From Thecamonas trahens ATCC 50062 (Eukaryota > Protista > Apusomonadida): DNA of 64,000 nt. The DNA lies in NCBI RefSeq assembly GCF_000142905.1, contig NW_013657674.1, forward strand, positions 90,393-154,392, written 5' to 3'. Made by a program: the position numbers and the translations under genes. The notes under the pieces were generated by a model. It worked only from the letters and a program-made list of their open reading frames with translations. It was not told the origin of the DNA and searched no databases. Positions 2,981 through 7,311 of the stretch are shown here, piece after piece; within the stretch, counting starts at the first letter, position 1; each line of letters opens with the position of its first letter.

Positions 2981-4717
2981 ATGTCTCTACGACGGTCGTG
3001 TGACGCTTGCCGCTTCTTCCACAGACGGTGCTCGGGTGAGCGTAGTGGCTGCCAGGACTGTCTTCGCCGTGGGGAGGCCTGTGTCTACTCGCCTCGCAAG
3101 CGGCGGCGAGCAAGGTCAGAAGCCAGCCCGGCGTCGTCGACGAGCACCACGCCGGGCGAGAGTTGCAACACGGGCGACAGAAGCAGCGCAAGTGGTGGTC
3201 AAGGAAGTAGTGGAGCGAGCGTCAATGTCAACGGCGATGATGAGGAGCGCAAGAAGCGCATCAAGCGCGTGTGTACCCTGAATCGCGCTCCGAGCACACG
3301 CGTCGCCGAGCTGGAACAGGTCTTGTGGCTCTTCTCTCGGTTCGTCAATCCTGCCCTCGGCGCTGCACGGCTGAGCGATGCGATGCTCGCGCGTCTGAGG
3401 CGTGTGGGTGGAACGCCAGATGCGGGCCCGGAAGAGGCGATGGTCGTCCACAGCATGGTCGGCTATGTGCGACGGAGCACCGGCGCCGAGTGCCACAGCG
3501 CCATTGCGGCGGCACGGAGCGTCATGCCGTCGACTGCCGCCTCGCCGCAGGCGGGATCGTCAGCCGAGCGATTTGGCGCGTTGGCCCATCTCATTCTTGC
3601 GGGCCTGCACATTGGCGAGAACCCAGTCGAGGTTCGGCGCCACGTCTCGCTCGGATGGGCTGCGATCGATGTCGCCTTTGTCAAGGACGGTAAGCCAACC
3701 CGCATTATGGACCGCGCCACGGCGGCGTCGGACATGGGCGCACTCATCCGTGCCTTCGCCGCTTTGGATGGCCTGAACACAATCGGCCTGCAGCTGATGG
3801 AGCTTGGGCCGGGTGATGCCCATATGGCGCGCTGCCTCTTCGGCTGCACGTTCATTCCGTCGTTTGGTACCTGGAGCCCGATGCCACCGCTGTGGTGGAC
3901 CGCCTTTCAGACTGTCTACTTTCCCATTGTCGAAAAGTACATTGGCTCGGCAGCGTTTTTGGACAACTTGTCGCCGCTTGCCGTCCCGCTCGGCCGCAAG
4001 CTCCAGGCTATTATGAGTTCTGGGCTTGCGGCTCCCTGTAGCGACGGCGACGCGGACATTGTTCGTGCACTGCACAACGCCGTTCCTGGCATGACGCTAG
4101 CGCTTGATCTGCTCAACGCTGACCTCGGCTCCAACTCACCGCTGGAAGCTCTCGCCTGCGGCGTCCCTACCGCTACCGAAGCCGGGTTTCTCTCGTGCAT
4201 ACTGGACCACATTGCAGTAGCCGAGTCGCCCTGGGCGCCAACGCGAGTAGATGAGGCCGTGGCCATGGTCAACTCGCTCGATAACGACATCGTTTTCCTC
4301 TCGAGTTTCGTGTCTCTCTTTGCCATCGGTGCTTCCATTGTCGCCCTCTCGTCGGCCATTGTGTCACACTCTGTGCTTACTGGCATTCAGACCATGCTGT
4401 CGCGAATCCCCCACGACCCCCTCGCAAGTGTTGTGACGCGCCTTGTCGAGGACGCGTGTCGCAAGGCCGCTGCGCCAAACACGACCGAAGACCCAGCGCT
4501 CTCTGGCATGACGACCTCCTCGTTTGTTGAAAGCGAGAATCTCTTGTTGGCTCCGCATGATGACGGAAGCTCGGCCCCTGCCGACCAATTGCATCTCGAG
4601 CCTGTCGTCGACATCAACCCGGCGGAGGAGGCGGGGTCTGTTGACAACCTCCTTGCCATGCTGCGGTTGGAAGCCATGCAAGACGACGATTTCTTGCTCC
4701 AAATTCCCCAAAGTTGA
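2981..4717 (+). CDS. Zn(II)2Cys6 binuclear-cluster transcription factor
   Basis: ATG 2981 gives MSLRRSCDACRFFHRRCSGERSGCQDCLRRGEACVY, which is C-x2-C-x6-C-x6-C-x2-C-x6-C. It is followed by a basic NLS (RKRRR) and ends in an acidic C-terminus. Confidence 0.85.
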   Translation: MSLRRSCDACRFFHRRCSGERSGCQDCLRRGEACVYSPRKRRRARSEASPASSTSTTPGESCNTGDRSSASGGQGSSGASVNVNGDDEERKKRIKRVCTLNRAPSTRVAELEQVLWLFSRFVNPALGAARLSDAMLARLRRVGGTPDAGPEEAMVVHSMVGYVRRSTGAECHSAIAAARSVMPSTAASPQAGSSAERFGALAHLILAGLHIGENPVEVRRHVSLGWAAIDVAFVKDGKPTRIMDRATAASDMGALIRAFAALDGLNTIGLQLMELGPGDAHMARCLFGCTFIPSFGTWSPMPPLWWTAFQTVYFPIVEKYIGSAAFLDNLSPLAVPLGRKLQAIMSSGLAAPCSDGDADIVRALHNAVPGMTLALDLLNADLGSNSPLEALACGVPTATEAGFLSCILDHIAVAESPWAPTRVDEAVAMVNSLDNDIVFLSSFVSLFAIGASIVALSSAIVSHSVLTGIQTMLSRIPHDPLASVVTRLVEDACRKAAAPNTTEDPALSGMTTSSFVESENLLLAPHDDGSSAPADQLHLEPVVDINPAEEAGSVDNLLAMLRLEAMQDDDFLLQIPQS

Positions 4718-4749
4718 GGATAGCTTGCGCTACTCTTGCGTCTGCGCTT

Positions 4750-6029
4750 CTACTCGGAGCCTTGCCGGATGTTGAGCATGACAACAAAGACCGAGACATA
4801 GACCGAGAGCGCCTCAATGAGCGCTACGGGTGTGATGAGAAGGCCGCAGAGTCGAAAGCCGAACCGCCGACTGCGGATCCGGAGCAAGGCCCGGTCGACC
4901 GCCGCGTGCTCTTCTGCTGAAGAGCACGAGTACAGCGCGACGGTCTTGAGCATGCGAGTGGTGCCGATGGAAAACATCGCGATGCCGCGATGAGGATGGG
5001 TGCGAGGGTGGACATGGCTGTCAGGATGGCAAAAAACTGCAGTGCCACAAGATCGTTCGATGAGTAGTCCTCGATAACGACCAGGGCGACGGAGAACATG
5101 GCGATGGTGACTAGCTTCAGGAGACAGATAAGGATGAACATCGGCTGAAGAATGCGCATGGCGCGAGAGAGATCGTGGCAAATCTCTGTATGGCGGGCAA
5201 GGATGGTAAACGGCTCGAGCGTCCTCAACGTGGCCTTGACTCGTGCGCCAAACGCGAGCAGCGCCCCGATGACCAAGGCCGCTGACCCGATCCATGGCAG
5301 CATGATGAACGAGAGCGCAACAAGGTAGCCAGCCCGGACGAACGGGTTCGACTTGACGCCATCGAGAATAAAGTCGACAACCCGCGAGTGGTGCGCGTCG
5401 TCGTCCCAAGCTGTTGCCCACGCGCTCATCACATTGATGGTGCACACAACTGCGGTGCCAATGAGCGCCCACTTGAAGATCCGATCAACTCGCGCCCGCG
5501 CCTCGGCTGCCGATGTCGTGGCCAGCATCAAGGCCACTAGCTCGGTGTACCAGTCGACCGGCAAGCTCCAGGCCGAGGCCAGGAGGAGGAGGGCAGTGTA
5601 GCCAAAGAGCAGCGCATTGACGCCCACAATGGCTGCGTACTCGCCGGCCCGGGCCACCATCGCCTCCCACGCCGCGCATGAGATGCCGGCAAAGACAACG
5701 GCGCCCACGCACGCGCCACCCTTGCGCCACTTGCTCCGCATGCCAACAAGTCCGGCAAAGCGCAGAACGGCTCCAAACCGAGCCGTCCACACCATCAACC
5801 GGTCGTGACTCGGATGCCCCTCGTCCGAACCGCCGGCCTCGAGCCCATCGACATCGACATCGACACTATTGTGGCCACTGTGGGCGAGCTCCCGGCTCGG
5901 CGCCACCGGGCTGGTCGGAAATATCCCCCTCAACGGCGGTAGGCTGGCCGGTAGTTCCCGCATCCGCACCACCGGTGGGGAGCTACCCGGCTCGGGTTCT
6001 GTACTCAAACCTCGGCTCAGGGTCACCAT
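4750..6029 (-). CDS. Gustatory-receptor-like 7TM ion channel (GRL/7TMIC), split by a 1-nt frameshift near 4971-4986
   Basis: ORF 4824-6179 has six hydrophobic helices. The seventh, GR-like segment GFRLCGLLITPVALIEALSVYVSVFVVMLNI lies in the overlapping frame ending at 4750. One inserted base joins the two frames. Confidence 0.7.
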
Positions 6030-6428
6030 GAACGAGAGTGGCAACTGCTCCACGAGCGCGACAGTAGAGGACGAGGACGAGCAGGTTGCACAAGAGGCCT
6101 GACAAGGACTGGACGACAGGTGTGTGTAAAAGGCACATCCATGCACAGGTACTGTAAGCATACGAGCGATTCGAAACACGTTGCCTTGCTTGGGTGACTT
6201 GTGGAGTGGGCATCACAAATTGGCAAAAACAGAAGTAAAGCACCCCCCCCTCCTCTCCCTCCCTCCCCACTCCCTCCTTTCCCCTCCCCTCAATTGTCGG
6301 TCTGTTGTTGGATGCCGGTCGGTCGTGTGGCGGAGGGTGCGAATGAAAAAGTGAAAAACATGACGAGCGAGCGAGTGGCGATTTGCGCGAGCTGAATTGG
6401 TATTCACTATCCCTCTCCATTTCCAAGC

Positions 6429-7311
6429 ATGACTGTCAAGCGTCGGAACCATGGCAAGAACCGCAAGGGCCGCGGCTCCGTCCCCTTTGTGCGCTGCACC
6501 AACTGCTCGCGCGCCGTCCCCAAGGTACGCACTCTATCTGTCTCTTGCTGGTCCTGAGGTGTCTGCCCATCTCCTTACCTCCGCCCTGCGCCGTGTCTGT
6601 GCGCTGGCGGCTTTGGCCGACTGGCCGAGATGCTTGAGCATTTTTGGTTGCTGCCGTCGAGTCCAAGGCAGGCCACGGCGGCCAACGCCTGCAGCTGCGA
6701 CTGCGGGTGCTACGGGCAGGTAGCTGTAGTTCCGGCTGCGCCTGGCTGAGCCTGTGGGCTGTGGCGCTGGGTTGTCGCGCGCGTGTGGGCGCGGTATGAG
6801 GCGGGGTGCTGGCTATGGGCATCGATGGTATTTTTGTGTGTGAGTGGGCGAGGAGGACGCACCGGGGGGTATGGGCAAGGCACTCACCTTTTGACGACCG
6901 GATGTGGCTGGCTGGATGCCCCTGTAGGACAAGTGCGTCCGCCGTATGCTTGTGCGCAACATGATCGAGTCTGCTGGCCAGCGTGACATCATCGAGGCCT
7001 CGGTCTACGACGTCTTTGTCATCCCCAAGATGTACATCAAGCTGACGTACTGCATCTCGTGCGCCCTGCACGCCCGCGTTGTCCGCGCCCGCCCGGCCAA
7101 GGACCGCAAGAACCGCGAGCCGCCGCGCCGCCCGCGCCGCCGCCGTGACGACGACAACAAGAAGAAGCCGTACGGCACCCAGAACAACGAGGCTGCCGAG
7201 TCGGCCATCGCCGCCGCTCTCGCCGCCAAGGCCGCCGCCGCCACCGCCACCGAGGGTGCTGCCGAGGCCGTCACCGAGACTGCTGCTGCCGAGGCCCCTG
7301 TTGAGGCGTAA
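6429..7311 (+). CDS. RPS26: 40S ribosomal protein eS26; exons 6429-6524 and 6928-7311
   Basis: [32 protein letters not shown]|DKCVRR...[13 protein letters not shown]. Intron GTACGC...TGTAG is phase 0. Confidence 0.96.

Follow-up and report, generated by a model that had tools for sequence, protein, structure and literature searches.

What does a gene encode when its two halves lie in different reading frames, and which of these halves does the public annotation keep? The question is raised by AMSG_01476 of the apusomonad Thecamonas trahens ATCC 50062, located on the minus strand of a 64,000-nt stretch of contig NW_013657674.1 (contig 6 of the assembly, positions 90,393 to 154,392, hereafter the window, whose own numbering is used throughout) and entered in public databases (KNC54622.1, XP_013761529.1, UniProt A0A0L0DQR5) as an uncharacterised protein of 295 aa. 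The 7TMIC superfamily (seven-transmembrane ion channels) gathers insect odorant and gustatory receptors (ORs and GRs), GRLs and the plant DUF3537 proteins. We conclude that the locus very probably encodes a 7TMIC protein of about 400-430 aa belonging to the TtraGRL3-like subfamily, that its frame is broken in the assembly, and that the intron of the public gene model is most likely artefactual.

Two overlapping open reading frames (ORFs) carry the gene: one in frame A (4824-6179, minus strand, 451 aa from a GTG start in translation table 11), the other in frame B (4750..5472), ending with ...MFSIGTTRMLKTVALY...GFRLCGLLITPVALIEALSVYVSVFVVMLNIRQGSE and a stop. Hydropathy places six hydrophobic helices in the frame A body and one in the frame B tail. 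The original prediction had read the first ORF as transmembrane helices (TM) 1 to 6 and the overlapping frame as the C-terminal tail, both joined into about 426 aa by one extra base at either a T4 run (4971-4974) or a GG pair (4985-4986); the ORFs were found where it had placed them, with an additional helix (TM0) in the body, and the two candidate indel sites are both present. As codons start at 4979 in frame A and at 4977 in frame B, one base added between the two readings joins the frames, and the joined length counted from ATG 6029 is 350 + 2 + 74 = 426 aa. Body and tail were analysed as separate pieces, the sole joined sequence used being the public model (P0001), and the parts of the gene are as follows.

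4750..4974, minus strand: tail piece in frame B, 74 aa plus the stop at 4750-4752, with intracellular loop 3 (IL3), TM7a and TM7b (GFRLCG...SVYVSVFVVMLN)
4771..4842, minus strand: TM7b (LLITPVALIEALSVYVSVFVVMLN), hydropathy peak 2.18, containing S-V-F-V-V-M-L-N-I
4843..4860, minus strand: GFRLCG, the GF-x-h-x-G motif at the TM7a/7b turn, placed by alignment with paralogs and Pfam 7tm_7 proteins
4945..5048, minus strand: 'intron' of the public model, 104 nt, GT..AG, most likely an artefact bridging the frame break
4971..5000, minus strand: zone of the break from frame A to frame B, placed by the codon-usage switch and the paralog alignment
4980..5801, minus strand: body in frame A, 274 aa, TM0 to TM6
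4983-5057, minus strand: TM6
5076-5213, minus strand: TM5
5226-5345, minus strand: TM4
5409-5510, minus strand: TM3
5565-5636, minus strand: TM2
5652-5729, minus strand: TM1
about 5757-5792, minus strand: TM0
5802..5963, minus strand: probable polar N-terminal extension, with candidate ATG starts at 5963 (best), 6029, 6161 and 5795

To which family does such a protein belong? The tail gives the most direct answer. Searched with a profile of 12 TtraGRL3-like sequences from which AMSG_01476 was excluded, it is recovered at E 3.5e-7 among the 842 ORFs of the window and at E 8.5e-5 in the whole 28.7-Mb genome, where it ranks fourth after TtraGRL3, an intact paralog on contig 21 (the C21 paralog) and TtraGRL1; a profile of 2 relatives likewise detects it among the window ORFs, and its identity to the C21 paralog reaches 44% over 39 aa (E 3e-7). 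Apart from one gap of a single residue, the tail aligns continuously with the C-terminal ends of paralogs and Pfam 7tm_7 proteins, which brings GFRLCG opposite GFRLFG of the C21 paralog, GFRLAK of TtraGRL3 and GFRVGG of TtraGRL1, as well as opposite IGFTALG and IGFTMWG of the 7tm_7 proteins P0016 and P0015, so that the G-F-x-h-x-G element upstream of TM7b is present and intact. At the position of the canonical TM7 motif T-Y-h-h-h-h-h-Q-F, in register with STYFFLLVQY of P0016, stands instead S-V-F-V-V-M-L-N-I, in agreement with the divergent TM7b that had been predicted. This divergence has to be read against the published protist GRLs, which keep at most three TM7 motif residues (PMC7746228). 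By contrast, the C-terminal signature of TtraGRL3-like proteins, R-R-x-x-G-F-R-h-x-x-x-L-I-T...K/E-x-h-S-h-h-x-S/T-h-h-x-h-L-x-N-h-R, is present, and RRFGFRLCGLLITPVALIEALSVYVSVFVVMLNIR aligns to TtraGRL3 (with a single one-residue gap), to the C21 paralog and to P0004-P0006, members of a subfamily whose scope covers apusomonads and marine metagenomes.

The body is linked to the same subfamily by profile-profile comparison, hhalign giving a 94% probability and E 1.3e-7 over 250 colinear columns from TM0 to TM6, while an unrelated multi-TM ORF used as negative control reaches 0.6%. This control (L006:2049-3173, minus strand, 374 aa) adjoins TtraGRL1 and has no GRL3-like relation by hhalign. Under the same local settings the body scores 43.8, compared with at most 20.4 for its reversed sequence and 40 global shuffles, and with a mean of 17.6 +/- 5 for 40 shuffles preserving the hydrophobic pattern; the real score tops all 40 shuffles of either kind. 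Neighbours of the body in a language-model search include DUF3537 (0.94) and 7tm_7 (0.91) clusters. Furthermore, a four-row Thecamonas alignment including AMSG_01476, searched against 1.84 billion representatives, retrieved 16 proteins, among them an apusomonad protein of Manchomonas bermudensis, marine-metagenome relatives, Vitrella GRL1 (VbraGRL1), and coral, hemichordate and one unrecorded-source protein that match Pfam 7tm_7 at 3e-11 to 4e-18, the animal ones at 2e-15 to 4e-18; VbraGRL1 and these Pfam-positive proteins came back at library-wide E values of 4e-6 to 8e-4. Similarity to accepted members is thus found at the profile level for the tail, for the body, and for the reach of the family to 7tm_7 proteins, which bears out the predicted membership of the GR/OR/GRL group.

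Could the locus nevertheless encode an unrelated multi-pass membrane protein, whose likeness to the family would amount to a hydrophobic pattern combined with a chance match of the tail? Against this stand the rank of the tail, fourth in the genome behind three GRLs, and a body match that spans 250 colinear columns where the controls fail, so that we regard such a coincidence as highly improbable.

The predicted fold points in the same direction. The AlphaFold2 model of the body has a predicted local distance difference test (pLDDT) score of 81.8, and its top 14 Foldseek matches are all insect ORs or GRs (TM-score 0.5-0.63), as expected from the original prediction of a 7TMIC fold. The TM0 helix is modelled at body residues 4-15 and aligns from residue 15 of MhOR5. 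TM7a and TM7b are visible only in the defective public model, at pLDDT 50-66, in which the tail maps to the C-terminal TM7 region of Orco and the aligned range reaches residue 474. In the ESM Atlas, the shape of the body model matched only unrelated prokaryotic clusters (TM-score 0.25-0.40).

How, then, are body and tail connected? A weak genome-wide match of the public protein (E 0.012) led to the intact C21 paralog, and when body (4980-5801) and tail (4750-4974) are entered as separate rows, they tile the alignment of this paralog and TtraGRL3 colinearly, which implies that the annotated 'intron' encodes the TM6 of the family. The body ends in ...ILIAAS opposite ...VIGGAA and ...ITFLAA, the tail starts with FSIG opposite HAQG and HSSG, and exactly two alignment columns separate them. 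One missing base fits this gap, as a single-base insertion anywhere in the overlap yields exactly two residues. Codon usage was scored as a log-likelihood ratio, for which 11 long ORFs of the window served as training set. The favoured frame changes from A to B between the scoring windows that start at 5015 and 4985, and GC content at third codon positions changes likewise. At the border of TM6 and IL3, at about 4971-5000, one base is therefore absent, either from the assembly or, as a real 1-nt deletion, from the gene; the T4 run is a slightly better-fitting site for the indel, because an R then stays aligned with R, Y or K of the paralogs. Frame arithmetic, the two-column gap and the codon-usage switch converge on the predicted single extra base.

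The public model solves the same problem differently. It starts at MRSKW (ATG 5741), runs to ...EDYSSNDL and then jumps to TVALYSCSS..., across a GT..AG intron (5048 to 4945); as this intron is 3n+2 nt long, the frame is restored. It had been anticipated that automated annotation would lose the diagnostic tail. This proved wrong: the 104-nt intron retains the tail, and what is dropped is the TM6 helix VALQFFAILTAMSTLAPILIAAS, TM0 and everything upstream of MRSKW. If 5048-4945 were truly spliced out, the cell would make a 295-aa protein with TM1-5 and the TM7 tail, an account that we consider improbable on several grounds. Within the 'intron', codon usage resembles that of exons, first in frame A (5048-4980, +0.91 bit/codon, against +0.72 in the exon body) and then in frame B (4979-4945, +1.07 bit/codon, against +0.54 in the tail exon), whereas the genuine intron of the nearby eS26 gene, which served as non-coding control, has about -0.4 in all frames. 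The 104-nt stretch encodes a helix aligning with TM6 of every paralog, and in-phase GT..AG pairs are common, its own being one of 17 in 250 nt. Despite near-identical family alignments, pLDDT is 69.5 for the public model and 81.8 for the body alone, falls to 50-66 directly past the splice junction, and the public model scores below the body against the same solved structures. Moreover, its annotated start removes the conserved M-x-W ... VL motif of TM0. The 104-nt intron is thus most likely an annotation artefact that restores the frame at the cost of TM6. Other in-phase pairs were also considered as real introns, for example donor 4975 with acceptors 4911-4917, and rejected, because the read-through product already has the length of the family with no gap left to fill, and codon usage in frame B makes 4979-4945 coding-like.

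The distribution of charges provides a further argument for the read-through product. Counting lysines and arginines (K+R), 24 fall on the N-terminus and intracellular loops 1 to 3 and 4 on extracellular loops (EL) 1-3 plus the C-terminus, a partition that works only with seven helices; skipping the 'intron' leaves an even helix number, and the arginine-rich IL3 (8 K+R) would then lie on the wrong side of the membrane, outside the cell. Only the read-through (about 404-426 aa) combines seven helices with a length of about 350-500 aa, in contrast to the 295-aa model. The predicted topology has an intracellular N-terminus and an extracellular C-terminus, inverted relative to G-protein-coupled receptors.

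Less can be kept of the predicted length at the N-terminal end. The arithmetic giving 426 aa from ATG 6029 is correct, and this start is the part left unconfirmed: the codon log-likelihood ratio in frame A is positive from about 5909 down and about zero or negative above 5940, and on codon usage ATG 5963 is the better candidate. Between 5940 and 6179 (minus strand) the frame of the long ORF is not coding-like, and the other frame is mildly coding-like at 5939-5969 and at 6119. Probably, either the first 70-odd residues of the 451-aa ORF are not translated or an upstream exon is present.

Several observations weigh against our interpretation as a whole. Pfam 7tm_7, 7tm_6, Trehalose_recp and DUF3537 match neither body nor tail at E up to 10, and the HMMER profiles of 2 and 12 relatives that detect the tail among the window ORFs do not detect the body. 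In the TM7 motif none of the four canonical residues T, Y, Q and F is identical, two being replaced conservatively (T to S, Q to N). With 41.4 against the real 43.8, one of the 40 shuffles that preserve the hydrophobic pattern nearly equalled the hhalign score of the body, and the best identity to any match is about 22%, with no close ortholog for a test of purifying selection. Because true 7tm_7 proteins were part of the AlphaFold2 alignment, the arguments from fold and from sequence overlap in part. Body and tail, submitted as two chains to a complex predictor to see whether the tail docks as TM7, obtained a score of 0.00 in a single-sequence ESMFold2 run that left alignments unused, and this result weighs on neither side. 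The verdict on the frame break, finally, is drawn from the assembly sequence, so that a small probability stays with the intron of the public model, and we know of no unicellular 7TMIC that has been shown to be a channel.

Some further searches were also negative. The close relatives P0004-P0006 and P0013 are likewise without a Pfam match, and the Pfam scan of the 240-aa overlapping ORF gave nothing at E up to 10. A whole-genome search with PF12056 found nothing, and is uninformative, as control genomes were silent too. A word-index protein search with the 445-aa ORF returned only its own public model, AMSG_01476, at 100% identity across 52% of the ORF, and that with the C21 paralog nothing, as the length window of the search leaves out both the 254-aa fragment of this paralog and the 1014-aa TtraGRL3 entry.

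Does the broken frame reflect the assembly or the organism? Chemoreceptor families evolve by gene birth and death, and pseudogenes are common in them. A recently inactivated GRL pseudogene, in which the break is real, would agree with the assembly as given, with the position of this gene as the most divergent of its subfamily, lacking a close ortholog, with the blindness of HMMER to its body, and with the loss of the canonical TM7 residues. On the other hand, about 1.2 kb of sequence contain no more than this one lesion, the codon bias on either side (+0.9 and +1.07 bit/codon) does not weaken towards the break, the model of the body is of high confidence, and single-base indels such as this one, which may lie in a T4 run, are classic assembly errors too. 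These points leave room for a very recent mutation, and we accordingly give inactivation a smaller though still substantial chance, and hold a sequencing or assembly error to be the reasonably probable cause of the break. Among the metagenome proteins, P0017 and P0020, which are variants of P0004, lose their TM7 tail to another frame right after 'RRQA', a break of the same kind as in the window gene and in the most diagnostic part of the protein.

By analogy with the solved insect receptors, an intact protein would have a cytoplasmic N-terminus and an external C-terminus; four subunits would assemble through a cytoplasmic anchor bundle made of the long TM4, TM5, TM6 and TM7a, TM7b would line a central cation pore, and this pore would open upon binding of a small ligand in a pocket formed by TM1-6. 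Tetramers, ligand gating and ion conduction are features of the solved insect receptors; for AMSG_01476 the analysis shows the fold, the number of helices and the distribution of charges, and the terms 'ion channel' and 'chemosensory' would apply to it through this insect kinship.

The closest comparison is with TtraGRL3 (AMSG_03829, PMC7746228) and the C21 paralog, from the same species and with the same helix order. AMSG_01476 has in common with them M-x-W...VL before TM1, P-x-x-W-[FY] after TM2, an invariant P in TM4, an H in the helix before TM5, and the C-terminal end G-F-R-L-x-G...L-I-T...S-h-h-x-S-h-h-h-h-L-x-N-h-R. It differs in a body identity of only 15-22%, in a shorter EL2 and IL1, in an F in place of the nearly invariant H after TM6, and in being broken in the assembly. 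Compared with MhOR5 (7LIC), Orco (6C70), AaegOR10, DmGr64a, DmGr43a and BmGr9, identity is 9-13%, TM7b reads S-V-h5-N-I where the motif is T-Y-h5-Q-F, and there is no match to Pfam 7tm_6 or 7tm_7. With animal GRLs and VbraGRL1 the link runs through the Thecamonas profile, and with plant DUF3537 proteins through the language-model search, direct pairwise similarity being absent. TtraGRL3-like proteins outside Thecamonas comprise P0004, P0005, P0006, P0008 and P0013, originating from Manchomonas bermudensis (EukProt), Lapot gusevi, and marine metagenome and Tara assemblies, and none of them has a Pfam 7tm_7 match.

The C21 paralog itself (L003:1477-2931, minus strand, i.e., C21:141959-143410) is an intact ORF of 484 aa with a full GFRLFG...LSLYASLLAILYNMR tail and 28% identity to TtraGRL3 (E 5e-29). 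It is missing from the published set of six TtraGRLs, and a 254-aa C-terminal fragment (P0003) was its only entry found in the databases; it is probably another unlisted Thecamonas 7TMIC.

The surroundings of AMSG_01476 are ordinary eukaryotic genes, coding for a gamma-tubulin complex protein, a Zn2Cys6 protein, eS26 and a double E2. The Zn2Cys6 gene (plus strand, last base of the stop codon at 4717, Pfam Zn_clus at 2.5e-6) lies tail to tail with the GRL gene (minus strand, stop at 4750-4752), and as 32 bp separate the two stops (4717-4750), the 3' ends of both genes must overlap or be very short. The eS26 gene (6425-7311, plus strand) is split into two exons by an intron of about 390 nt (GTACGC...CTGTAG).

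How new is this gene? The published set TtraGRL1-6 corresponds to AMSG_02047, 10508, 03829, 02477, 05888 and 08306 (PMC7746228; Benton, Dessimoz & Moi 2020, eLife 9:e62507), and a 2023 structural paper uses the same six; AMSG_01476 is absent from this set, as checked in the sequence file of the paper, which answers, for these six, the comparison that had been suggested. Himmel et al. 2023 report thousands of further 7TMICs from a screen of the AlphaFold database, whose filters the defective 295-aa model could have passed or failed. No paper names AMSG_01476 or A0A0L0DQR5 in our literature search, outside which lay the Dryad list of Himmel et al. 2023. In either case AMSG_01476 adds one member to a known family, in a species already recognised as having it, together with an annotation correction.

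It leaves the picture of the family unchanged. However few they are, 7TMICs outside animals and plants carry the argument for an early-eukaryote origin of insect chemoreceptors, and Thecamonas is a key species with six published members, a count that AMSG_01476 and the C21 paralog raise. The locus also illustrates how a helix can vanish from a gene model when a fake intron conceals a frame break, and screens requiring seven helices and about 350-500 aa would therefore probably drop such a gene. It supplies, in addition, a natural variant of the pore helix, S-V-h5-N-I instead of T-Y-h5-Q-F. If the break is real, its coexistence with the intact C21 paralog would tentatively suggest that in a unicellular flagellate, too, a small 7TMIC repertoire is renewed through gene birth and death, as the chemoreceptor families of insects are.
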